Origin: Dimorphilus gyrociliatus
Taxonomy: Eukaryota > Animalia > Annelida
Length of the DNA: 64,000 bases
Direction: 5' to 3'
NCBI GenBank assembly: GCA_904063045.1
Contig: CAJFCJ010000024.1
Coordinates: 925,777-989,776 of the forward strand
Shown here: piece by piece, positions 41,601 through 64,000 of the stretch
Position numbering within the stretch: the first letter of the stretch is position 1
How the letters are laid out: the number at the start of each line of letters is the position of its first letter
Position numbers and translations under genes: made by a program
Notes under the pieces: generated by a model
What the model saw: only the letters and a program-made list of their open reading frames with translations
What the model was told of the DNA's origin: nothing
Databases searched by the model: none

Positions 41601-44600
41601 AATAATGACTTTGCTTTAAGTAAAAGTCTTCAAAATTACATAATTAAAAAGAATATATCAATTAATTCAGAATTAAAGTGGATAAGTGATATTGAAATTC
41701 ACCCTGAAAATTATCCCAATGGGATTAATTGGTTTGGTGGGAAGAAATGTCTGTATGATCGACATTCTGTTTTTAGTGATAATCATTCCTTGTTGGTTGG
41801 AGGTGTAAAACCAGTTATTCCTGACAAGCTCTACCATTTGTTAAATTGTGATTCTACTTTGTCGTTTGACATTGTAAATAAGCAATTTCAAGTTCTCCAG
41901 TTACAAATACGTCAATTAAGAGGCAAAAATATGGAAAAAGCGGAAAACATAATCAAAATACTTTACAAACAGATTAATGCCTCTAATGATTGGGTGTCCG
42001 AGTTCAAGGACCAACAATGTGCCTGGACAGGAAAGGAATTTGTTCATCCTACAAAATTCATTATAAATAATGGAAATATTCAACTAGAACCCTATCGATT
42101 CTATATTCCCAATAATTTTGTAGAATTCAAAGAATTCTATTTAAAATGCGATGCAAAAGAAGACCTGGATTGTATAAATGTAAGTTTCTACCTTTTTCAT
42201 ATTAATATCTGTGCTAAATTTTCATACAACCTTAAATTAGGTACTAATAGATATCAGTAAAAATCCGCCTTCAAGCTGTAAAAATGGTATTCGCATATGT
42301 TCAGATATTTTGAACTCTATTCAAGATACTAATTCCTACGAATTAAAGGATATAATGATTCCAGTGGAAACAACAGATTCATGTACTTTTTCTATGAAAC
42401 CGCTGAGCAGATGTACACAAGCAGCTATTTCAAACTTTACTGGAGTAGACGATGATTGTTACATCATAGAATTTGACGAAAATAGATTCAGTTACATTCT
42501 TCATAATCAACTAAGACTTAGCGAGGATACAAAAAATATATTAGATATTCGTTCCATGAATGAATCTTTATTGGAATTTGAAGACTGGACTCAATCCGAA
42601 GATTTATGTCGTAGATTGAAACAATTGATTTCAGAATATAAAGATGGAATTGGGCCAATTAAAGAGCTTATACAAAATGCTGATGATGCTAGAGCAACAA
42701 CCGTCAAAATCATGTTCGATGAAAGATCCTCATCTATTAAAGACGAAAGCAAATATTTTATCGGTCCATCCGTTTGGGTTTATAATGATGGACTATTCAG
42801 TGAAAGTGATTTTGACGCAGTTAAATCTATAAATTCTGGCCACAAAGAATTGAAAAAGTCAACAATCGGAAAATTTGGTATTGGATTTAATTCCGTATAT
42901 CATTATACAGAAACACCGTCATTTATATCGGGTAACAACTATGTTCGATTTGATCCCCATGCTCAGTACTCTGGAAGCCTTTCAAAGAAACAAAGAGGAG
43001 GTTATCGAATAAAATTGGATGAATCCAAATTAAAACCATTAAAGAGATTACTATCACCTTTTGAAGGAATATTTGGTTGTAAAGTTCCATCACAATGTAG
43101 ATTTGATGGAACGCTATTTAGACTTCAATTGAGAAGTCGTGAACAAGCTTTTCAATCTTTAATTTCTAAAATATCATACGATTCCGAAAATATAGAAGAA
43201 CTAATACAGATTGTACTTAATTTCTCTAGTGATCTTCTTCTATTTACCCAATGTATATGCGAATTTCAAATGTTTCATATAAATGCTTCAGGAGGCATAA
43301 AGGAAATTATTAATATGAAAAAAACACTTGGCAATGCGCTTAATACGAAAGCTCTTCAAATTGAAAAAATACCGAAATGCTTAAGGGAAAAAACAAATTA
43401 TATCGAAGTAATACAACATGCAAATGTCTTATTGGATAACTATGATTCACAAACAGTAGTCTTGATAAACATAGATAAGAAGGTGGGTTCGGCTTTTAAG
43501 TATTTGAACAAAGGTGAAGGTGACGAATCATATCAATGGATTATTGGACAAAACAAAATTACAAATGTCTTACCAGAACTGGAGGAGAGAGGAAGCGTAG
43601 CTATTGGGGGAGTTGCAATTTGCTTATCAGAGAATGTTTCATATGACAATTCCCTGTATTGTTTCTTGCCGCTTCCTATTTCTACGGACCTTCCTTTCCA
43701 TTTGAATGGATCATTTGCGACATCACATGATCGAAGAAATATTATTAGAAATACTAAAGGAGATAGACATGTAATTGAACATGAATGGAATAAATTGCTC
43801 TTTGAAAGAGTAATTCCGTTAGCTCTAAAAGATACTTTTTCTGCAATAAAAACAATAATTATAAATGGTGAAAGCTGTAGATGGTACGAGCTATTTCCGA
43901 CGTTAAATGTTTATACTGATCACTTTATTGAAAAACTCATTCGAATTTTTTATAGAGAAATGATTAAATCTTCTGATGGCTGGTTTATCTTTCAGATGAA
44001 CTGGTATGAACCAAATGATATACGTTTCTTAAGTGAGGAACTATACAAATTGGAAGAACTTACAAATATTGATTTAGACACTATTGCATTTGATCTATTT
44101 GAACTGCCATTTCCTAAATTGCCTATGAGTTTACGAAACACTATTGAAAAATGCGAAGAAGAATACTTTATGAACAGAGTAATTGATACCAAAACGTTTT
44201 ATTCGAGTCTTGTGGAGAACAGTGATTCAATTAACAGCAAACATTTTGATTTGATTATTAAAAGTGGTCTTGAACAATTTCCTTCAACGATAAGTGACAT
44301 ATTGGAACGATCGAAGTGTATAAGAACAAAACCAAATGGTATTTTAAAATTACCTAAAGAAGTTGTTTTGGAAAATTCTGAATTATCGCCCCTCTTCGAT
44401 TTTGAAGAGAATCGATTTTGTGATTGGGATAAAGAAGACGTCGAAAGTGTGAAAACTGAACTTTCTGCTATTGGAATCATATCTACTAAACTTAGTGTAG
44501 AACAAATTATTGAAAGATGTAAGGTATTTGAGGAGAATAGAAAAGATCCAGACTTTATTAATAGAGGACATTTGATATGTTCAGTTATTCACAAAACACA

Positions 44601-47600
44601 TTCTTCAGGAACAATTATAACCAATGAACAACTAAATAAACTAAAGAACATTTCATTCATTCCAATAAAAGTAAAGTCCGAAAAGTGGGAATTAGACTGG
44701 CACGATGACGGATGTACATATTTATATTCTTCTAAAGCGATCAGAAAATGTGATTTTCGATTGATAGCTTTTGTGAAACCAGCTCTATCAAACCAAGTAC
44801 CATTAAGATTGCCTCAACTCTTGAACATTGAAGAGGCATCTGTTGAAGAAGTGTTAGAGAATGTAAACATTCTTCAAAATTGTAAAATTTCTGAACAAGT
44901 AAAGACAATATACAATGAGATCATTACTTTTTTAAGTAAAAAAGACTTTAATTCACAAGATTTTCCACTTCTTGTTCACCATAACAATGGTTTTAAATTT
45001 GAAAAAGATCATTCAAAATGCTATCGGACCGGTATTTTTACTAATCTTGAACCATTTATGTTTGAATGCGTGCGAAACTCCAATGCTATCAAATTTTTAA
45101 ACATTCTCCATGTAAAACAAGAACCTTCATTCAATGATTTCATTCAAATTCTGAGCGAAATCAAGAAGAAAAGTGATGAGAGTTGTACCTCGATTTGTGA
45201 TGATGAAGTTAATATGATTATTTCAATTCTCAATGGCTTAATTGCTGATAAAACAAATCTGAAAAATTTCCTAATGAATAACGATAACCATATTTTTGTT
45301 CCTAGTACAAACAATGTTTTGTTAAGCCATAGAGATTTATGTTTTTGCAATATTGATTGGATTGATAAAAGTGAACTACAAGTTTGTCATGAGAAAATTA
45401 GTATTAATCTAGCTAAGAAACTAGAAATTCCAAGTAATCAAGATAAATTCTTTTCTTCAAAATCTATTGGAATAGGAGAAGAATTCGGTCAGTCAGAGGA
45501 CTTACTCAGTCGTATTAGAACTCTTCTTCGAGCATATCCAAATGATGGAACAATTATTAGGGAGATTATTCAGAATGCTGATGATGCTGGCGCTACTGAA
45601 ATTCAATTTATTCTTGACGCAAATAAGTATGGAGATGAGAAAATATTTGGAGATTCGTGGAAACCTTTACAAAAGTGTCCAGCATTACTCGTCTATAACA
45701 ATGGAAAATTTCGAAAAGAAGATTTCGACGGAATTCAAAGGTTAGGTGAAGGAAGCAAGAAGGATGATGTAACTAAAGTTGGAGAATTTGGTGTTGGTTT
45801 TAATTGTGTATATCATTTAACTGATGTACCTATAATTGTTGCTAATCATGAAGAGAGAGGTCCAGTATTTTGTGTATTTGATCCTCATCGTTCTTATTTT
45901 CCGAAAGCAGAAAATTTTTTAAAGCCAGGGCGAATGATAAGTTTAAAAGATATGAATTCATATTCTGATGTTTTACAGACACTGCCCCAAGAATTTGACC
46001 TAGAAAACGGAGTTCTATTCAGATTTCCACTTAGAGATAATAAAATGGCCAACAGGTCCAAACTGTCTGATCGACCATTGCGTTTTAAAGAAGCAGAAAA
46101 AATTTTAGAAGATCATTTTCATAAAACTGTAAAAGAATCTTTATTTTTCTTGAATAATATTCAAAAGATTGTATTTAAAAAGAAGATTGGCGATTCATAT
46201 GAGAATATATCTTGTATATCAACTTCAAGGGAACCGTTTAGTAAGAAGAGCCAGCAAACTAATTTCACTCAAGAAGTTTATAATAATGATCGTTTTGATC
46301 CTCTTTCTTTATGCTATTATCTCAAAATAAGTGATTCAAAGAAATATGAAAAATGGTTAATTTATCGTTCATTTGGTTTTAGGGAAATCGATAATTTGCC
46401 AAGCGATTTAAGTAATGAAAAGTTTAATCCTGAAGCTGGTGTTGCTCTTCCAATCAAATTGGAAACTTCGGAGGGAATAAAGAAAAAGATATTTTGTCAT
46501 CTACCTTTACCTATTGAAAGTCATATGCCTGTTCATATTAATGGACGTTTTTATTTAGACCATGAAAATCGAAGAGCTATCCGAAAAAATGAAGACTCAG
46601 ACAATGCAATTGAAGTTCGATGGAACTTGTACGTTTTCAATAAACTAATAGGCTATTGCTATGCTAGAATTATTGAAAAATTAAAAATTTTAGTTACGGA
46701 AAAAGAATTGACTTTCAATAATTTTTATAGTTTTTTCCCAAAATTACACAAGGAAGATACTTTCATTAAGGGAGTGTGTGAAGGCTGTATGAGTTACTTA
46801 AAGAAGAGTAAAATATTTGCTTTTGAATCCTCAAATTCCGCAATAGAATGGTTGTCATACAATGAACATAATAAGAATTATCTGTTATATTTTCAATTTG
46901 ATCGTAAATCAGTCGTTAATATATTAAAAGATATTGGTATGAAAATAACAGAAGTACCTACAACGTTAAAAGAAGAATTTGCAGCAGGTCATATGGATAT
47001 TTATGAAGTGAATGAAACTGAAGTTGTCAAATTTTTACTATCGAAATACCATTGTTTTGGTAAACTTCCTCTTCATATCACCGAGACACCCTTTATGAAA
47101 GTACAACGGTTAGAGAGTGTTATTAAATTTATCGATACGGAATTTGAATCAAAGCATAATAATCAGAAGAAATGTGACAGCAAAAATGATGATTTAGAGA
47201 GGTTGCCTTTATTTTTGAACGAAGAAGATGAGTTAGATGTATTCGATCCATATAATTTGATAATAGCAACAGAATACACTCTGTTATTTCAAAATATGAA
47301 AGAGAATGTTGTAAACAAGAAAATCATTAAAACAAGTTTGATTTATAAACTTAAAAAAACGGGAGTAGTACGAGAAGCCACTACGGATTTGTTAGCTCAA
47401 TATATAGTCGATAATATCCCAGAAGAACTTGACAAATCAAAACAGATTGTAGAATATCATGAGAAATATGAAGAATATATTGCCAACTTCTGGAAATGGG
47501 CGAAAGATCAACACAAGGGATCACTAGTAGCAATTACAGCAATTTTACAGCAATTTTCAAATTATTCCCTTCTACCTTGTAAATCCAGTGACAAAATTTA

Positions 47601-50600
47601 CATTATCCCTTTAAAGTATCATAAAGCAATTTGTTCGGAAAATAATGACATGATTACAAAGTTGAATATTTTTCAACGAGACAACAATAAGGTGGAATTT
47701 AACCAATACATTCCAGATTTAATTTATACCAAAAATGATAACATTTCTGATTTTATTTTGTGTTTGACATTATATGATGGGGATATTCTGCCGAAGCTGA
47801 ATTATCAAAACTTGGAAAAGGAAGAGTTAAGAAAAATATTTCGTTGGGTTTTAGAAATTGAAAAAGACGCTGATAATACTAAGCTACTTCATCTACCCGT
47901 TTTCGAAACGATTGGTGGAAAATATACATCTTTATTTGAAAAGCATATTTATACGTTGAAAACCTGCGCGTATCTAGATTTTACAAATGAAAATTCATGG
48001 AAACCTAATGATATTCACATTTTAGACTATAAAGTTTACAAGACAAGTAATATTTGGAACAATTTACTTAAGTACAAAGCGAAACTTGTTTCACCGCTAT
48101 TTTTCTTTGAGAAATATATTTTAAAAAAATTTCCTGATCTTGAAATAGAGGAACAAATTAAACATTTACGTAATTTATCAACGTGTCTGAAACTCGAACA
48201 AGAAATTAATGAAGCGAAATATTACACTGAAAGTCTGAAATCCATTGAATTTGTTCAATGTTTAGATGAAAAATATCGGAAACCATCAGATACATTTAGT
48301 ATGAATATGAGTAAACTTGCAGACAAATTTGATTTCAAAAGAATCCCAATTTATAAAAAGATATTATCTGAAACAGATAGTCACTATTATAACTCTTTGA
48401 ATTGTTTGGAGGAACTTTTGATAGATTTAGGAATGAAAGAGATTATTTCATCTGATATTTGTCTTGGATTCTGTGAAATAGCTTCAAAAAATCCCGAACA
48501 GCAATACGATGTGCAAATACTTCAATTCCTTTTCTACAGTGATATATCTGAATGGCCTGCCTCTCAGTTAGACAAGGTTATCAATTATCCTTTTATTTAT
48601 CCTGCTAAAGTCAAAAACGAATATGAAAAGTTGAGCAAATGTACTAAAACTCTAATTTCAATCAATAATTCATATCTAAATACTAAAGAGGCAAAATATG
48701 CATTGTTTTGGACAGCTTTTCCAATGCTTCCGTATATCGATACAATATCAATTGAAAATTTTCCTAAATTTAAAACTTTAAACGTTAAAACTAAAGTTTC
48801 CATTACAGATTTGATTGAACATCTGAAAAATTTAAATGTAATTTTGAGGGAAAAAATAGAAAATGACTGTGACAAAGTTAAAATGATATTTGAAATATAT
48901 GGTTATATTTTTAAATATTTAAGTGAAGTTAAAGAATCAAAAGAAGACGTCAAAAATATTCTACGTGTACCGATCCCCGATGACGATAATAATGCAATAA
49001 TTGATATGATCAAAATACAGAATTTATACGAAGACAAAGATAATTACAATATTCCTGGATATTTTTGTAAGAGACCAGAATACTTGTTTCCACATCAATC
49101 ATTATTATATGAAATGGGACTAGTGAAGAAGGTTGAACCTCAAATTTTATGTAATATTATGAGTGAAATTTATGAATATACTAATCAGGGTAATGTTCCT
49201 TTAAATGAAAAAAATTTACATGCAGCTAAGTCAGCAATAAAATATCTTCAATTCATCATTCAAAATCGAAAAATTGATCAAATTGAATCACAGCTGTATC
49301 TGATAACAAGAGATGAAAATGGTAAATACTTTTTAAAACCTTCGCAGGAGCTTTATTTTATTGATATAGAAATTCACAAACAATTAGAAGCAAAACTGAT
49401 AAATTATAAAATTATCGTATGTTTTGACTTGAATTTATCAAAAGCTTTCTTTGGTCGCTGGAATAAAAAATTTTTGCCTAAAAATATATCAGAACTTGTT
49501 GAAGAAACAATTGAAAGTTTCAATGAGTGCTCGTCTAATTGTAGCTCTGTTGGTGATTTCTGGAAAGATCGTTTGAGGTCTCTGCTATTAAAAACAGCTC
49601 TAACTTCAATTCTTTGTCAAATTGGTGTTGAAAGTACTAAAGAAAAATATCTGAAAAGATTATCAAATATTGAGATCAAATTAGTATCAAACTTGATTAT
49701 TTCGTTGCGTTTTGCAGCTAAAAAACATAAAAAAAGCCACAGCTACTTCATCGATAATAGAAATGAGCAGATTGTAATTTACCTAAATGTGGATTTTAAA
49801 AATGAGGTATTGAAAATTGATTTTAGAGAACAAGCTAAACAGTTGGCAAAGTACATTTTGTTCGATTTAAAAGTTGACGAAGAAAGGGTTGTACACGTTT
49901 TCTTCGACTGTCTTTACACGCAGAATGTAAACGATATACAGAAAATATTAGAAGAAAATGGCTTCAGTTTACAATACTGTAATGAATATGATAGCCTATC
50001 CTGTAGAATCTTGCTCGAAGGAGAGATTTTAGAACTGTTTTTCCTAAGATCAGAGTTCCAAAAAAATGAAGTAGTAGTATTTCAGGAAACAACCAGTTTA
50101 AGTCGTTTTCTCCCTAAAAACGCTAGTGATGAAAAATATGAAGCTATATTTTATGTTAGTCAGGTTATTGAAATTTTTTCAACCGATAAAGACAATATCT
50201 GGAATAATGAATACATTATTGAATATCAACCGCAAAAGCATATAAAAGTAAAAGGATACGAGCTGTTTTACATCAAAACGGATACTAACAAAGAAATAAT
50301 TGATAATTATGTAAAAAATTCTGAAAAAGAATCAGTGGAAAAAGATCTGTTACTATTAAAACTATTTGATACAGAAGTACAAAAAAAGGTAGGCATTGTC
50401 GTCGAAACATTATATTAATATAATTTAGGATCGTATCAATTCTTTATGTTTTTATATCAGTGTATAATTGAGACATTCTTCAACTGGTTGGAAGAAAAAC
50501 ATAATGACAACTATAAAGCTAAATGCGCGAAGATGAAAACAGTCATTCATGAAATTGTAAAGCTTAATTTTACACAGGAAGTAATAGAATTTATTGAAGA

Positions 50601-54708: not shown

Positions 54709-56455
54709 GATGGAGAATAAGATATCGATGGTAACTAGTTTTTAGCAAACTAATCGAAAGGAAAAACAAAGTAGCAAAGCTTCTTCGTAATAGCTACTTA
54801 CCCGCAATTACAAAAAATAGTGAGCGCTCCTTGGCCGAATAACCCAGCAGCTATATTTAAAATGAAACTGTGAACATTCTTTTAGAAATAAAGTACCCTA
54901 TTAATAAACCCTTATAGCGTAATTAAAACATCTAAATCTTGTTTACAGTCTTCTCTGGAAAGAAACGAACAGCTATGGCCGATATAAAATTTATATTTAA
55001 ACAAAGCTTTGTCTTTGTTATAAAAATAACATGAGTATAAAACATGGAGGAAAAACAACAATTGTTCAAATATCTAAAGAATTTTTCTATTGTCTTTTAG
55101 GATTTCATTACTCTTCTTTAAATAGTTTTATTACAAAGACTGTGTATATTCTAGAAGAGCGTGATGAAAGAATAAGAGAGGCATAAGAAGACTAAGAGAC
55201 ACTTGTCAAACTGTCTCTAAAAGCATCGATGTACATCCGAAAGTGCATTAAGAGAGGATTGTAATATATTTTCTATATTTCGACTTATTTTTACACAATA
55301 TGTTATCCCAAACTTGACTTTGTCGTTGATATCTTCATTAAAATTCATAGTTTTTGCATTTTGTTTTCCATTTACTAAAGCTGAGGACAAATAGATTGCT
55401 GATTAAACATACAAGTAGAAGATAGTCAGAGATGTTACTCTCTTACTGGATTGTTGCATCATGGACAGCGATATTTTGCATATATTTCAAAAACATATGT
55501 ATTTAATCTCCAAGATTCATAAATTAGCATAATACCCCATTTAAGGCTGTTTCTCTGTATTCTCTAGTCTCTCTCTCCCTCTCTTTCTCCTGTCATCTCT
55601 ATCTAAGCTGTTTATTTATTATATATCTAATTATTTCTCTATACTTCTTTCAAAATACACAAAAATAAATCTAATCAAGATATTAATAATTCAATAAAAG
55701 CAAGTAATATAAATGAAGAGGTGTCCTTTTTTGGCATATTCATAAATATTCACGTTGTCTCGTACTTACAAATTAAGGGGAAATGACTTTAAAACTACAT
55801 ATAGCGATATATGGCAGGAGGCTTTTTGAAATTGTGTCCATTAAAGTCTAACTCTTTTGCAAATGACTTTACTTAAATTATATATAAGTTATTATTTTTA
55901 AATTCTTTATATTTAGACTAGCAATCATTATTTCATTTAATTTATCAATAGCTCTTTTTATGCTTGTTTATTTATTATATAGATGATTCTTTTGCCCATT
56001 TGTAAATGAAAAGCTATACAAAGTATCTACACCAGCATACAAAATATAGATTTATAATAATCGTTATTTAATTTATAACTTTGTTTTCTTATTTTGGATT
56101 TAGGAAGTATTTTCTATATCTGAAAAAAGAAAAGAGAACTATTAGATTTATCAATCATTCTGCAAATATTTGTTACTTACCTTCTCTACCAGACTTTGAT
56201 TTCACTTACCTATTTTGTTTCTTTTCTTCCTTGTTTGCACATATCACTTTTTCATTACTTAAAATATTAGAGTAAAAGGATATAAACTTTACAAATTTTA
56301 GTAACCTCTTCCCCTGCTCCTCTTTACAGTTTTAATGTTGCACTTACAAGAAGAAATCGTTTAGGATTACTTTTTTCAGCTTTTAGTGCTTTTCCTTGAC
56401 CGTAGCTTTTTTAAATTAAACGCATGCATAAGCTATTAATACCTTTTTATTTAAA

Positions 56456-56458
<3 letters not shown>

Positions 56459-56490
<32 letters not shown>
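56459..56490. repeat. (TC)16 microsatellite
   Basis: Pure TC run. Confidence 0.95.
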
Positions 56491-56493
<3 letters not shown>

Positions 56494-57280
56494 CTCTACA
56501 GATTTAATAGTCTAATAGATGTAAAAGTATGTGTTTTTCTAAGTTCTTTGTTTATGTAGAAACGTAAAAATATTCACACATTTTCGTAAATATGTATAAA
56601 CACTTTATACATTTAGTGTAAATGAGATAAGCCAATATTTACTTTTACTTATGCACATTTACTTTCTATTAAAATGTGAAGGTAAGGAAAATATGTCATA
56701 TAAGCTTTTTTCAAGGTAGCAAAAAATATACATGATCAGATTCTTTTTAGCCGATAAAAAGAGTAAACTTAACAATACCCCTCTTTACATTATTCTCTTC
56801 CTTAAACTAATTAGAGAAATTTCTTTTACAGTTTTCCCCCATATATAGCTATTATACAATTATCAAAGAATTTCAAACGCTTGTTAATACCATGTAGAAT
56901 ATGCTGACAAAAATCTTGATAACAATGTAATTATATAATTAAAGGTTTGGTTTACGTGACCGAAATAAAAGCTCAACTTTTATTTATTTATGACGCAAGC
57001 CAAATCAGATTTATTAACAAATCGTTATTTATAAAACTATCGATAAACTTTGGCAAACATTATTTACCTTATAAAATTCAGTATTAAACAATCTATTCAA
57101 TTGTCTAAGTAGTATTATACTTAAATGACAAGTGATAGAAAATTTAGAAAATTTTCTATCCTATTTAATTGCATCAGAATTTGTTTTAAGATCTATTCAA
57201 CCTTTTCTTCCTTTTAACCATCTTGCAATACTATAGTAGTTTATGTAAACTATTTTCTAGATGATCAAAAGACATCCATC

Positions 57281-57297
57281 TATATAAGGCTATAAAA
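57281..57297 (+). promoter_or_regulatory. Candidate TATA box(es) for the prepropeptide gene
   Basis: TATATAA (57281) and TATAAAA (57291), about 120-135 nt upstream of the ATG at 57416. The background is AT-rich, so support is modest. Confidence 0.4.
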
Positions 57298-57415
57298 ATG
57301 AGGAAAGAATTTACACTTCTCTTAAAATAAGATACAGATACATACACATATATATATAAAGAGTAAAACAGAAAGAGAGAGAGAGAGAGAAAAGTAATTA
57401 AACCGACAGAAAAAA

Positions 57416-57898
57416 ATGCTGAGAACCTTTATCATTTTGCTTATCTGCATGTCCTTTATGGCAGCCGTCAACTGTGGTAAGTTGTTCAATGTATATCAAT
57501 ATATATTTATTTGTTTGCTTTATATCTCCTACTCTGAGAGAATTATTAATAAATTACGCTCTTAAATAATTAAAATATATCCTTATTAAATAAATAAATA
57601 TGAATTGAAACTGCCTTTATATTTAATTACCAGTTTTCTTTGTAAGAAATGCTTATTTTATTGTAATCTTTGCTTATAGACGATAAACATATATCTATAT
57701 ATTTGCATTTTTTATTTATCTTTAGATGGCTATGAATCCCTAGAATTGGGAATGGACAGATCAAGACGTAGATGGGTTGATCCTCGTCATATGATGTTCA
57801 AAATGTACCTTCAATGCCTAAGAAACAATAGTGACGAACCAAAGTGCCTCCAAGCTTATAAGACAATGGGTGGAGAGGACCAATTTCGAAAGATGTGA
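57416..57898 (+). CDS. Small secreted prepropeptide (neuropeptide/hormone-like), 77 aa, 2 exons (57416-57476, 57726-57898)
   Basis: MLRTFIILLICMSFMAAVNC-DGYESLELGMDRSRRR-WVDPRHMMFKMYLQCLRNNSDEPKCLQAYKTMGGEDQFRKM*. It has aaaATG, a perfect donor G|gtaagt, acceptor tttatctttag, and AATAAA at 57979. Absent from the ORF track because each exon is short. Confidence 0.82.
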
Positions 57899-59509
57899 AT
57901 TCTTTTAGTATAACAAGCACCCCTTCTAGGTTCTACAATAGTTTTACATCTGTTTTTGCATGTTTTTGACCTTAACCAAATAAAAAATCACGTCTTTTTT
58001 TCTTTAGTATTTTTTTATGCCTTACTTCTTAATATGTTATTCAATGACTTATGTTGGTATCACAGAAAAAGGAGAAAGACATCTTGTAAAATTTTCCTTT
58101 CGTTTGTTGCAAATACAAAAAGCCTTTTTCCTCTTTTCTTCTTCTCCTTCGTCTCGTTCCCAAACTAAATGTCGAAAATTTAACAAGAGTATTATGTGAT
58201 AAAATAATTCTTCTCAGTTAAATTAACCCTTGGTCACAAGTTACGGATCTATCAAGCAACTTTCTATATCTATAAGTCACTTAAAGTAAAAAATAGAACA
58301 ATAAAGGAAAGGCCATTTAGATGGACAGTTAAATAAATTAAAAGAGAACGAATAATAGAAAAAACACAAAAAAGAAAAAATACTTCCCTTTTACTTTCTT
58401 TACCAGTATTTAAAAAACAGAAAGGCAAGAAGTCGTTCAAAAGTGACAGAAGCCTTTTAAATGTGTCATCAATTTGGTTAGTATTAGTAGATCTGTCGAA
58501 AAACTTTGCCAATAGAGTACTTAGTGAATTTAATGAATATTTATCAAAATATACAAGTACATTACTTATTTAATAGAGGTTATACGACCCGTCCATTCTG
58601 ATATATCCTGATAGTAAGAAGGTCGTAATGGGCAATTGATATTAATAGGGATGTACGATTAGATGGTAGAAAATAGGGGAAAGATGAGATCATTAGATTG
58701 TTGTTCTTTCCATATATACACACAACTATCATTTTTTTTATAAACATAGGACAGACTCTTTATAAAGAATACCCTTTTTATGACGAGTATTTACAGAAAG
58801 GATGACTGATACTACATGTCATTTTCTCTCTAATGTATTTGAAATCAGATATATATCATATAGTAAGTATATATACGGTATCTACAATATTTCATGATTA
58901 TTGAAAATGAAACAAAAATAGATTACACTCATATTAGATAAAACAACTCCTACTTGAAATAATAGCTGCTTTATCAGTTGGCAAGTTCATTGCTACTATT
59001 ACAAATTCTTTCGTTTATTCATACTAATATAAAAACGGATTTAAATTACTTGTATAGCCTTTGGAATATAACGTAGAATCTAATCTTTCATTCCCAGTTA
59101 TGGTTTAGATGCAGTAAATTAGGATAATTATCTCCTTTTCTCTTAGTATGCTGTCGAAATTACCAACCTACGAGACTCTTCGTTTATTACTTAAGAAAAG
59201 AAAGAGCAGCTCGAGAAAAGGAAAAACTATTAATTACTAAGGAAGAATTACATGCATCGAAAAGAGAAGAGTTCAATAATCCAAGTTGAAAGATTATAAT
59301 AAAGAATCCAGAGTTATATTTATATATAAATACACTGTATAGTGTCTTGTAAAGGAAGAATAGTATAACACTTTTGTAGATGTTTATACAGATATTTTAA
59401 GTACTTATTTGTTATGTTCGCTTATATTAAAAAAAAAATTTTTAGGACCATATTCCCATTATAATACGCCTCACTAAAGCGCCCCCTTATTGGCAGTCGT
59501 CTGTCAGAA

Positions 59510-62500
59510 ATGCAAAATACTACAGAGAGTCAGAATCTTTTTGTAACTGCTATAAACTATTTGCAGCCGTATTTAACGGGTTTAATATGTTCTTTAGGTA
59601 TTATTGGAAATTTATTGAACATAGCTGTTTTGGGACAGCATAGAATGAGAAAATGCGTTTCTTTAGAGAGAACGTCCATACTCGGTTTTATAGCACTTTC
59701 TATATCGGATACGCTTGTATGCTTATGGATGTTACCTAAAATCTTTCTTCATCATTCTCAACTTGTATTTAAAGTGAAATCCTTTGGTGTGTTTTACCAA
59801 AAATATGGACACGCGATCTTGGATGTTTTCGTAATGCTCTCTACTTGGATAACTGTTGTAATGGGTATTGTTAGATTTATTATATCCAAGTATCCTTTTG
59901 TGGCTAAATCTTACGTCAAATCAAAGAGATATATTATTATATTAATCCTTTTACTTCCAGTCTGCATAATTTGTAGTATACCTTCTTTTTTCTACTATAC
60001 ACACGTAACTTATAATGGATCCTACGTTGTATTTCCAACGTCATTCGTCATGAATAAACAAAGGAAATTAGCTTATATCATCTTTAAATTTTGGATCAAA
60101 TTCTTTCTGCCAATACTTTTAATGGGCTTCTGTAATTTTCAACTAATCAAAGGTAATTGGAAAATTATTAAAATTATTCATATACAATTCCCTATCTTGC
60201 TAGAAATTTGTTTCTTAGAGACAAAATGATAAGTATTTTTTAATTTTCAATTCTTAGAAATTCTTTTGCAGTTATTCATATGCATAATAATTATTCATAT
60301 ATATAATTGGTATGTCAATTTTAATTACGAAGATAAGTCAAATGAGTACTTGATGTGCAAAAGAACTATTTATAGAAGACTGTAGCCATTGTATCATTTT
60401 TAGCCAAGTAATATAAAACGAAAAGTAAAATTTAAATAACAAAAAAGAAGGAGAAAATAAATGAAGAAGAGGCAATGAGAATGAGATTTGTAATAAAAGC
60501 GTAAGACAGAGAGAGAGTGAGAGAGAGATTGAATATCCAAACTTGAAATACAGAATAATGCATGTTCGTCAGTCATTAAACAAATCTTTGACACTATATT
60601 TTACACAAAGGTATCTAACTTCTTTCGTATGCTGTTGATAAACGTACAGCATGTAAATGATAGATTAAGAAAATTTTATTGGTCGGTCATGTTCATGGCC
60701 TAAATAATTAAGTATTTTATATGTAGTATCATATAAACTTATATAGTTTTTATTAAATCTAACAAAAACGTAAGATGTTAGACTGTACAGAATGTAACTC
60801 CAAAGCTGTACAGTCACAATCTTACATGATAGCTGAAAGATACTAATGCAAGATAGAGATAAAAAAAGAACACATAGAAACGAAAAAAAGCGACGATAGT
60901 TCTCTTTTCTTCCTATATCCGCAAAAAAGTCTATCTAGTCGTTCTGTATAACGTATTCTTGTATTTTAATTATTACTATCTTGGGTTTAGGTAAAAAAAA
61001 AAAAAGTAGAGAGGGAGACGAACGTTTCAATTCGAGAGAGAAACTTACTTTCATTTCATAGTGCTTGTCTTACATTCCCTTTAACATAAAATCCCCGGAC
61101 GGTCATCTGCTCTCAAAAACTTATCCTTCAACTCTTTTAAAACAAAGGGAGAGAAAATATATAAATCAATACTTTCCTTCTCCTTTATCTTACTAGTTTG
61201 ATTGATTTATAACGAAAATTAATTAAATTAAGACGAATTACTTTCGTAAAGACAAAAAGTTTTGGGCGTGCTGAATTTACTAATCTTGCATATTTCCCAA
61301 AATAGGATTTTAACGAAAAGAGAATAAATAAAATATAATGAACATTGATTAATTTGTTATTGTTCATATAAAAGACAGAAAGAAACACTATATTGTTTAG
61401 CATCGTGATTTAGCCTACTAGCTTATTGTTTAGATTTCATGGCCCAGAGGATATAATCAATCAAATTCTTTTCTCTTATGATTTATCTTAAATGATGGGA
61501 AAAGTAAAAACAAAAATCAGAGAGTAAGGAAGAAGATGTAAAATTACCGTTATTTTTCAATAGGTCACTATGTCATGTAAGATGTAAGGAGTATAACTTT
61601 TCCCAAAGTAATAGCTATCATCATCTGGTAATTTTTCCAATTCTCTTGTCTCCTCTCGGCCGCCTATCCACTGAAGAAGAATAAAACTCTCGTTGATGAA
61701 TATACTAATAATCAAATTATAGATAACTAAGTATGTAGTAATTACTAATTATTAAAAATATAATATATCGTAGCTTAGTAACAGAAAAGGGTAGAAAATA
61801 GAAAAAAAGAACGATTGAAATTCGCCAAAAAAATTCATAATTATTTATTTATGTGTAATTTAAGTATAGGATTGTTTTGGAAGGCAATGGAACAAGAGCC
61901 ACAGAGAGAGAGCGAGAGAGAGCGAGAGAGAGAGTTTAAACTATGAAAAATTAAACGAGAATCGATTGTTTATATTATTACGCAAACAATCATATCAAGT
62001 GATTCCTTCTTCCTCCATCTCTCTCTCTCTCATTCCTTCTTCTTTCTCTCTTTTATCATTGATTAGCAGACTATTAAACAACAAGGAACAAAAGAAAATT
62101 TTACCTTTTGATCTCCTATTGACTATTGAAAAACGTCATTTACCAATTAAATATATCGAATATGCAAAAGAATTTTGACCACCACTTTAAGTTTATTCTA
62201 ATTATCAATATTTTTCTATTTAATATCAAAAATCAGTAATTTATAAAATGTTTTCCAATTTCCTTTGAAAGTTTTGTACCTATCGAGTGTTTTACGTTCT
62301 CGAATATGTGCTCATGCTCATCCTACGACGCACAGCAAACACGTTACGATTACTCTTATCGTTATTATCCTTCTCTTTATCCTACTAATGACACCTGCAG
62401 AAATCATTGATTTAGTTTTAAATATAAGATCACCATCGAAAGGAAAAGGCAAGTTTTTAATGGCTTGCTGCAACTTGGTTAATATTATACAAGCTATGAA

Positions 62501-62708
62501 TTTTGCTTTAAACTTTCTACTCTATACTTCATTTAATGCGACGTTTCGAAAAACTTTAATCTCTTTGACTAGAAGATGCTTTAGATTAAGAAGACCTTTT
62601 GACGATAGAAATAGCCTAAGAACATCAATGACCAGCGTTCGAGTTAGAATAAAGCATACAGAAGAAATTCCGCTGCATCACTTGCACAAAAAACACTCGT
62701 TTGCCTGA
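59510..62708 (+). CDS. Class A peptide-type GPCR, FMRFamide/sex-peptide-receptor-like orphan, 359 aa, 2 exons (59510-60152, 62272-62708)
   Basis: LGIIGNLLNIAVL (TM1), ALSISDTLVCL (TM2), LSTWITVVMGIVRFIISKYPF (TM3), FFLPILLMGFCNFQLIK (TM5), TITLIVIILLFILLMTPAEI (TM6), AMNFALNFLLY..NATFRKTL (TM7/H8). Phase-1 intron G|gtaatt..tttgaaag|TT. Confidence 0.9.
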
Positions 62709-64000
62709 AGAATCATTTGAAATTTACAATTCATTAAAAGGCATTTTTACTTTTGAAAACCGGAAGAAAAGTTGATAATTTTCAGATGATCTACGTTGTT
62801 TTTCTTCTCTGAAAAGAAGAGATGCCTGAATATTATAATAATAATTTCTATTTCTTATTATCTTTGCTACAAGTAGTATTTGAAGGGTCTATTTACTTCA
62901 TAAAATAAACATATTCATACATCTTTTGTAACTGTTTAAAATTATTATTGATTGACAGACAGACAAACAGACAAACAGATAGACAAGAAGAGGTAAAAAA
63001 AACCATGAAATCGCAAAGGATATAGATAATATAATTGATAGAAAAATTTTAATTTACACGCGTTACAAGGACTCTTAAATTAGAAATAATTCCTACAATA
63101 AAAAAGCTTTCAGTTGAATTGTGTCGAGTTGGGTTAGTACTGGGAATAATATAATCAACTATTGCCTATTAATTAGTTACTGTTCAAATATGGTTACCAC
63201 TATATCTGGGTTTGAGAAACAAAAGAAAAAAAATACAGTTTCATTAAAAAACCTCTCATATATAGATATATATTTATTTCCATTACTATAAGCGCGAAGT
63301 AGACAGACTGTCTACAAGCAGAGATCGTGAGACACATTCGCAAATAATTAAAAACATATTTAGGGAATTGATATTAGTTTCACCCTCTTAGCGATATCAA
63401 ACTTTTCTTATTGTGTTTTTTATCTATATTTTATCATTTTTCCCTTCTTTATCCGAGCAGTTTAACTATGTCAAAAACAGGGGAATGAATGATAGCGAAA
63501 TGACTATTACTAAGAGTACAAGTTTTCTGTTTTTCTTATAATTCAATTAATTTTTATTTTAATTGAATTTTTCATTTATTTTAAATATTTTAGTAATATT
63601 TTTCTTTCTTTCACGTGACATTTGTCATTAGTCAAAAAGTGATTTTTATATCTATAAAATGTCTCATTTATTAGTACACTTCAGAAAAAGTGAGCTATAA
63701 AACTTCATGACCCAAATATACTAAAGTATTAGTTACAACAACTTGTTTGACACTCTGTGACATTTATCATCTAACCATTTATCCATCTATCCATCCCTCC
63801 CTCTCTCTTTCCTCTTCCTCTTTTTCTCTCTTAATAATTAAATTAAACAAATGATACTTATTTATGGCTGTAATATACACTATATATATTTATATATAAC
63901 TAATTAAATTATCATTAATACCCTTAGGACAGAACTAGCCATTATATCATATATATAAAAGTAATGAGAGCGTTCTCGGAAAAAGTTAAGGAGAGGCTAA

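Follow-up and report, generated by a model that had tools for sequence, protein, structure and literature searches.

The window analysed here comprises 64,000 nucleotides, positions 925777-989776 of contig C24 of the miniature marine annelid Dimorphilus gyrociliatus. It contains a small two-exon gene, hereafter the peptide gene (start codon at window position 57416, stop codon ending at 57898), followed on the same strand by a gene for an orphan G-protein-coupled receptor (GPCR; 59510..62708). The locus raises two questions: is the small gene the source of a secreted peptide, and is the receptor beside it the partner of that peptide or a neighbour by chance? The explanation that we favour is that the gene encodes a lineage-restricted secretory precursor, that the disulfide-stapled, helix-loop-helix peptide released from it would signal outside the cell, chiefly in adult females, and that the GPCR is a coincidental neighbour. 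We give this explanation, taken as a whole, an even chance.

A spliced, expressed and single-copy gene

The start codon at 57416 is the first ATG, in good context, downstream of two TATA-like boxes that may form the core promoter (57281..57297; TATATAA at 57281, TATAAA at 57291). The coding part of exon 1 (57416..57476) specifies Met1 to Cys20, a predicted signal peptide, and the first base of codon 21. An intron of 249 nt (57477..57725; GTAAGT...TTTAG) splits this codon into G and AT (Asp21), and the coding part of exon 2 (57726..57898) runs to a TGA stop at 57896-57898. An AATAAA polyadenylation signal is found at 57979..57984. All of these features are on the plus strand. An Rfam scan of 56000-64000 gave no match.

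The joint 57476/57726, with GT..AG ends, is present in one contig each of two sequencing runs, in agreement with the two-exon spliced gene proposed in the initial annotation. Run X1 is a marine metatranscriptome recorded as RNA; it is 95-99% alike to the window and therefore derives from a near strain or a sibling species. Run X2, whose kind is not recorded, is 100% alike to the window. X2 behaves like RNA, as the joints of both the peptide gene and the GPCR gene are present and contig depth on the peptide exons reaches 452, versus 6-7 in the stretch between the two genes. This drop in depth identifies the two genes as separate transcription units. The X1 contig ends at 57991-58017, while the X2 contig continues to 58133. 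As the X1 contig holds 44 more letters upstream of 57411, the 5' untranslated region (UTR) begins before ~57367. No paralog of the peptide gene is found in the species' own genome, where both exons match only this locus, so the spliced form cannot be mimicked by a retro-copy. The gene is real, spliced, expressed and single-copy.

The conceptual joined product is letter-identical to the public protein DgyrCDS13318 (CAD5125077.1, UniProt A0A7I8WAB3), an uncharacterised entry of 77 residues, of which exon 2 provides residues 21-77. The gene is therefore already annotated. The initial annotation had described it as missed, which is true of the open reading frame (ORF) track and of the neuropeptide precursor list published for the species (PMC7854359 supplementary file 5), from which DgyrCDS13318 is absent, but not of the public gene set. 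What is new here is the predicted precursor character of DgyrCDS13318, which was previously unrecognised.

Comparison of X1 with the window suggests constraint on the protein product, although the sample is small. The coding part of exon 2 shows three differences (57808, 57856 and 57859), and all three are synonymous third-position changes (Tyr, Ala and Tyr), while synonymous sites make up only 18% of the sites in the compared coding sequence. At least five differences fall within the next 93 nt of the 3' UTR. Divergence to X1 is 1.8% in the coding sequence versus ~7% in the 3' UTR.

Published expression data point to regulation by stage. In the contrast 'adult vs juvenile' females, DgyrG13318 has a baseMean of 418, a log2 fold change of +4.07 and an adjusted P value of 8e-8 (PMC7854359, Supplementary Data 3). 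The gene for 7B2 indicates how the two numbering systems relate: it is DgyrP13078/13079 in PMC7854359 and DgyrCDS11345 at NCBI, where the second isoform is an 'unnamed protein product'. Because the isoforms of 7B2 take one DgyrCDS number, DgyrCDS numbers count genes, as DgyrG numbers do. We consider it likely that DgyrG13318 is DgyrCDS13318; if this mapping holds, the gene is probably raised ~17-fold from hatchling to adult female. Under the same mapping, 7B2 (DgyrG11345) has a baseMean of 820, a level similar to that of DgyrG13318 (PMC7854359).

In the same source, the row counts of Supplementary Data 1 and 2 seem to have been exchanged when compared with the figure legend. There are ~1,900 rows under 'late vs early embryos' and ~8,300 under 'hatchling vs late embryos', whereas the legend gives 8,341 genes for late vs early and 1,870 genes for hatchling vs late.

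Predicted precursor anatomy and the search for relatives

Residues 1-20 form the predicted signal peptide and consist of one Arg, a 14-residue hydrophobic core and V-N-C. The Kyte-Doolittle maximum over 11 residues is 2.9, the grand average of hydropathy (GRAVY) is 1.98, and residues 2-22 are modelled as a helix. V-N-C ahead of the predicted cut would fit the -3/-1 rule. Residues 21-31 form an acidic spacer. Residues 32-36 are R-S-R-R-R (codons 57758..57772, plus strand), a putative furin/proprotein convertase (PC)-type site (R-x-R/K-R) directly before the predicted peptide. The R-S-R-R-R motif fits the furin/PC convertase consensus, and the genome contains processing machinery in the form of nine convertase P-domain loci and a 7B2 gene.

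The predicted mature peptide comprises 41 residues (37-77; 57773..57895, plus strand). Its sole Cys pair, Cys51 (codon 57815-57817) and Cys61 (codon 57845-57847), has exactly the spacing C-x9-C. No Gly-basic amidation signal is present in the predicted peptide. Besides RSRRR, basic residues are paired only at R75-K76, two positions short of the C-terminus, and a cut there would yield a 38-mer as a possible alternative product. The order of parts given in the initial annotation, namely signal peptide, acidic region, RSRRR and a 41-residue C-x9-C peptide that lacks an amidation signal, agrees with the sequence.

Two single-sequence models were made with AlphaFold2, one of the whole precursor and one of the protein without its signal peptide. 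They place a helix at residues 40-54, a loop at 55-57 and a second helix at 58-67, with a core predicted local distance difference test score (pLDDT) of 76-81. Cys51 and Cys61 lie three or four residues either side of the modelled loop, a placement that would fit a disulfide staple across a helical hairpin. The models agree with the disulfide helical hairpin suggested in the initial annotation, with the two Cys flanking the loop and a disulfide as the probable link between them. The loop region (N-N-S-D-E-P) includes an N-N-S sequon. The predicted mature peptide has a net charge of +2 and a GRAVY of -0.95, and about half of shuffled sequences equal either helix in hydrophobic moment. With such hydrophilicity, low charge and ordinary moment, it appears unlike a membrane-active antimicrobial peptide.

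Several known systems share this general design. Allatostatin-C, elevenin/L11, CCHamide/excitatory peptide and the Drosophila sex peptide likewise derive from small precursors, in which a signal peptide, a spacer and a basic cleavage site accompany a single two-Cys peptide, and which are encoded by small genes of few exons. In contrast to these disulfide-looped prepropeptides, the product of the peptide gene has no sequence similarity to them, and its ring spacing is 9 versus 6-8 in most of them and 11 in sex peptide. It would also be much longer (41 residues), non-amidated and helical on both sides of the ring. The D. gyrociliatus precursors of allatostatin-C, excitatory peptide and whitnin are present in the published list (PMC7854359 supplementary file 5).

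Aplysia attractin and the Er pheromones of Euplotes are water-borne, secreted, non-amidated mini-proteins of 40-60 residues with antiparallel helices held by disulfides, an arrangement that is predicted here. Unlike the peptide described here, they have at least three disulfides, and no sequence or fold match was obtained. Foldseek comparison of the pro-peptide model, which is of moderate confidence, with the PDB gave a best expectation value (E) of 4.4, and the top rows were short saposin-like helices.

Searches for relatives of the sequence were equally negative. No Pfam family matches the precursor above its cut-off; on the C-x9-C stretch, the sub-threshold matches are CHCH (E 0.007, 16.9 bits, cut-off 27.2) and CX9C (E 0.14, 12.6 bits, cut-off 26.4). 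A word-indexed search of 5.8 billion clusters returned DgyrCDS13318 itself only. A phmmer search of 1.84 billion representative proteins returned DgyrCDS13318 and one spurious repeat protein, and back-translated patterns gave 210 pattern matches in JGI metagenome contigs, none of which was confirmed.

The repeat protein, of 1,995 residues and from an ENA metagenome contig, was rejected as a homolog. Its phmmer E of 7e-7 is summed over 5 tandem repeats, whereas pairwise BLASTP gives an E of 4.7 with neither Cys kept, indicating a score inflated by tandem helical repeats.

Comparisons by language model give a lead only. The nearest clusters in the ESM Atlas are small prohormones (AKH, neuropeptide S, GnRH, NPF, PDH and corazonin) at scores up to 0.83, a value that one in three shuffled proteins also attains. 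When the ESM Atlas was searched by structure, the template modelling scores (TM-scores) normalised by query were all 0.51 or below and concerned short helical stretches; a CHCHD10-like cluster (TM-score 0.39) is among these weak neighbours. The view in the initial annotation that the peptide belongs to no known neuropeptide family is borne out by the Pfam, phmmer, word, ESM Atlas, JGI and Foldseek searches, all of which ended without a family match. As far as current databases show, DgyrCDS13318 appears to be lineage-restricted. Since these databases cover annelid transcriptomes poorly, this means that no relatives are detectable and not that none exist.

A proposed secreted signal and the competing explanations

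If our favoured explanation is correct, the 20-residue signal peptide would route the 77-residue precursor into the secretory pathway, where a furin/PC-type convertase would cut after RSRRR and the short acidic spacer would be discarded. A peptide of 41 residues would be released, or one of 38 residues should the C-terminal R-K be cut as well. A Cys51-Cys61 disulfide would staple its two helices across the short N-N-S-D-E-P loop. Adult females would be the main source of this non-amidated peptide, which would serve as an extracellular hormone, neuropeptide or pheromone. The structure of the gene, its splicing and transcription, the want of relatives and the purely synonymous coding differences are observed, while secretion, cleavage, the disulfide and a role in signalling are deduced from them, and the hormone or pheromone function proposed in the initial annotation is not established.

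Several observations weigh against this explanation. The signal peptide and its cut site were assigned by rule, without a trained predictor, and the AlphaFold2 models, each based on a single sequence, reach only moderate confidence (mean pLDDT 66 and 67). The selection signal consists of three substitutions, and in the absence of a homolog DgyrCDS13318 could be a young gene of little function. The equation of DgyrG13318 with DgyrCDS13318 is unproven. Even if it is correct, a 17-fold rise from hatchling to adult is atypical for a neuropeptide. Hatchlings already have a complete nervous system, so that a product of the gonad, a gland or the egg capsule would account for the rise equally well. 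Finally, a predicted complex of peptide and GPCR, described below, scores 0.45 versus 0.00 for the best control and leans slightly against a coincidental adjacency.

The competing explanation with the best odds, although we consider it unlikely, is that the gene encodes a secreted product of adult females with a structural, protective or reproductive role, such as an egg-capsule or gland component or a defence peptide. Such a product would have the same secretory design, and small secreted proteins confined to one lineage frequently have such roles. The probable ~17-fold rise in adults would coincide with the onset of oogenesis and capsule production in the life cycle, and a signal peptide, an anionic spacer, RxRR and a mature peptide make up the classic layout of antimicrobial precursors. 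However, a hydrophilic peptide of charge +2 whose helical moment is not above that of shuffles would be poorly suited to membrane activity. The gene is also single-copy and non-repetitive, unlike many structural secretions, and its expression is moderate (418, with 7B2 at 820), below the very high level usual for capsule and gland proteins.

A second alternative, put forward in the initial annotation, is that peptide and receptor form a linked module: the GPCR would have the 41-mer as its cognate agonist, and co-evolution would hold the two genes side by side. The receptor is indeed the next gene on the same strand at about 1.6 kb, with 1,611 bases between the peptide stop and the GPCR ATG, and its identity as a GPCR is supported by 7tm_1 and Srw matches above their cut-offs. 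Both genes are expressed and both appear to be under purifying selection. Both products are orphans, the peptide without a family and the receptor without a close named relative.

Small secreted peptide genes do occur beside receptor genes in the P/R mating-type locus of basidiomycetes and the S-locus of Brassica, the receptor being of the seven-transmembrane type in the fungi. Those loci, however, are polymorphic systems of mating and self-recognition in which linkage is selected, whereas chance accounts for the adjacency here. In animals, the genes for a ligand and its receptor generally lie apart. The pair has not been duplicated as a unit, as at least 33 further receptor loci stand against no paralog of the peptide, near receptors or elsewhere in the genome. 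Class-A GPCR sequences number 211 among the 14,203 genes, or ~1.5% (PMC7854359). With this share, one or two adjacencies are expected by chance for some 60 published peptide precursors together with unlisted ones, and about two if peptide genes number roughly 70 or more. The ids 13319 and 13320 are absent among the ~3,100 rows of the adult-vs-juvenile comparison; this is a weak argument against the module, as it presumes that the GPCR has one of these ids. The contig of the one external relative of the GPCR, described in the next section, is 1,286 bases long and reaches only 517 bases upstream of the receptor gene.

Complex prediction gave weak support for a pairing, which we do not count as a pass. 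GPCR exons 1 and 2 were entered as separate chains (exon 2 as residues 1-105, the split-codon residue omitted), with the 41-mer as partner. The ipSAE interface score was 0.45 (runs 0.47, 0.45 and 0.39) versus 0.00 for the best control, although peptides lie outside the calibration of this score; contact agreement between runs was at least 62% and the pLDDT of the partner at least 58. In calibration, only 5 of 78 solved pairs passed at 0.60 or below, as did each of the 4 mismatches that passed. A pass in this range is wrong in most cases unless the pairing was already probable beforehand. Among blind neighbour pairs, 7 of 44 passed. The prediction lifts the likelihood of a pairing from very low to low.

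By the counts above, the adjacency is near chance expectation in a compact genome and is most likely coincidental. We consider the linked module improbable, and the claim of a co-evolving pair is not established. A narrower version, in which the two genes are a private, genetically linked signal-receptor pair of dinophilids whose hormone or pheromone arose jointly with the receptor, has a slim chance. If true, it would exemplify a linkage of ligand and receptor that is rare among animals.

The gene could also be a young transcribed ORF of little or no function, arisen de novo or changed beyond recognition in an AT-rich genome, with a fortuitous resemblance to a prohormone. The protein is short, at 77 residues, and homologs are lacking among the 1.84 billion representatives, Pfam, the JGI metagenome contigs and the species' own genome. 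Nor is it found among the called proteins of the relative, though the relative's GPCR ortholog is in the collection. Against this stand the three coding differences, each of them synonymous, and the lower divergence of the coding sequence than of the 3' UTR. The promoter-like box, canonical intron, polyadenylation signal and first ATG in good context are those of an organised gene, which is probably also regulated by stage, and the signal peptide, convertase site and paired Cys form a coherent set. We regard a functionless ORF as quite improbable.

An intracellular CHCH-like (twin C-x9-C; PF06747, PF16860) protein of the mitochondrial intermembrane space is extremely unlikely. In its favour are the sub-threshold CHCH and CX9C matches, the helical sequence flanking a C-x9-C and the CHCHD10-like structural neighbour. 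Against it, the bit scores are far under the cut-offs, and the single motif falls short of the pair that defines the family. The segment from Cys51 to Cys61 is interrupted by a Pro and an N-N-S-D turn, unlike the continuous helix of CHCH, and a cleavable-looking hydrophobic N-terminus followed by RSRRR is foreign to that family.

Should the favoured explanation be correct and the peptide be a signal, it would add a family without known relatives to a very small and well-mapped annelid nervous and endocrine system, and the 'canonical' neuropeptide list published for the species would be incomplete. Lineage-restricted signalling peptides bear on the origin of new hormone and pheromone systems. 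A pairing with the adjoining orphan receptor would be notable if true; the evidence lifts it little above chance.

The neighbouring receptor gene and other features

The GPCR gene is composed of two exons on the plus strand. Exon 1 (59510..60152; 214 codons and 1 base) encodes the N-terminus to transmembrane span (TM) 5. An intron of 2,119 nt (60153..62271; GT..AG) follows, and the joint 60152/62272 is present in X2 with a 26-letter anchor and keeps the frame. Exon 2 (62272..62708) encodes the third intracellular loop, TM6, TM7 with N-F-L-L-Y, helix 8 and the tail, and ends with a stop at 62706-62708. The model is in frame over 359 codons, and seven spans can be read in its translation.

Searches with the receptor were done exon by exon, so that the split-codon residue 215 lay outside the queries. 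Exon 1 passes the Pfam cut-offs of both 7tm_1 (PF00001; 33.9 bits, cut-off 30.5, E 3e-8) and Srw (PF10324; 33.0 bits, cut-off 22.2, E 5e-8). Its nearest solved receptors are melanin-concentrating hormone (MCH) receptor 1 and galanin receptor 1, at E ~5e-6. Exon 2 (TM6-TM7) has weak matches to the thyrotropin-releasing hormone (TRH; E 5e-3), C3a and QRFP receptors. Neighbours in the ESM Atlas are rotifer and nematode clusters of 7tm_1, Srw and Srsx orphans, at 0.94-0.96. No named ortholog was found in the database comparisons, and a 'peptide-type' label for the receptor is plausible. The 'FMRFamide/SPR-like' label of the initial annotation is not established; what these matches show is a class-A, Srw-like receptor.

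The matches to both families and the further paralog loci in the genome, which are 22-39% identical, resemble the expansions of Srw-like and peptide-receptor-like orphans of other invertebrates. Unlike canonical class-A receptors, the translation has V-R-F in place of DRY, with the Arg kept, and N-F-L-L-Y in place of NPxxY, and it has no Cys at the top of TM3 or in the second extracellular loop, where the usual pair would be.

An external relative was found in Logan contigs of SRR23372229 and SRR23372216; its identity to the receptor is 78%, and its exon ends at the same point. The ratio of non-synonymous to synonymous substitution rates (dN/dS) against it is 0.07, with dS saturated at ~2. V-R-F is kept in this relative, which argues that the receptor is derived but constrained. 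In comparison with X1, 5 of 5 listed differences in the GPCR are synonymous. Judged from its sequence, the receptor is a class-A, Srw-like orphan that has diverged fast yet is conserved.

A word search with exon 1, in a length window of 118-375 residues, returned no D. gyrociliatus protein, though the 359-residue model is in range. The public annotation may therefore lack the GPCR or give it a model that differs in length.

On the minus strand, a spliced antisense transcript runs across part of the GPCR gene, at 59713-59993 and 60123-61892. In X1, a 62-nt minus-strand intron (59853-59914; GTAAGA...ACAG) lies inside GPCR exon 1. In X2, a 61-nt minus-strand intron (61487-61547; GTAATT...TAAG) lies inside the GPCR intron, and a 1,365-nt contig covers 60123-61487. 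The longest minus-strand ORF in the antisense stretch is 72 residues, so that a non-coding antisense RNA and a long UTR are both plausible.

The X2 contig over GPCR exon 2 and its 3' UTR continues past 62808 with 255 letters that are absent from the window. A mis-join of the assembly graph at a T-rich stretch may explain this extension, as may another exon outside the window.

At 42310-50418 on the plus strand, upstream of the peptide gene, one open reading frame of 2,702 residues carries repeated 'IQNADDA' ATPase-like motifs and looks sacsin-like.

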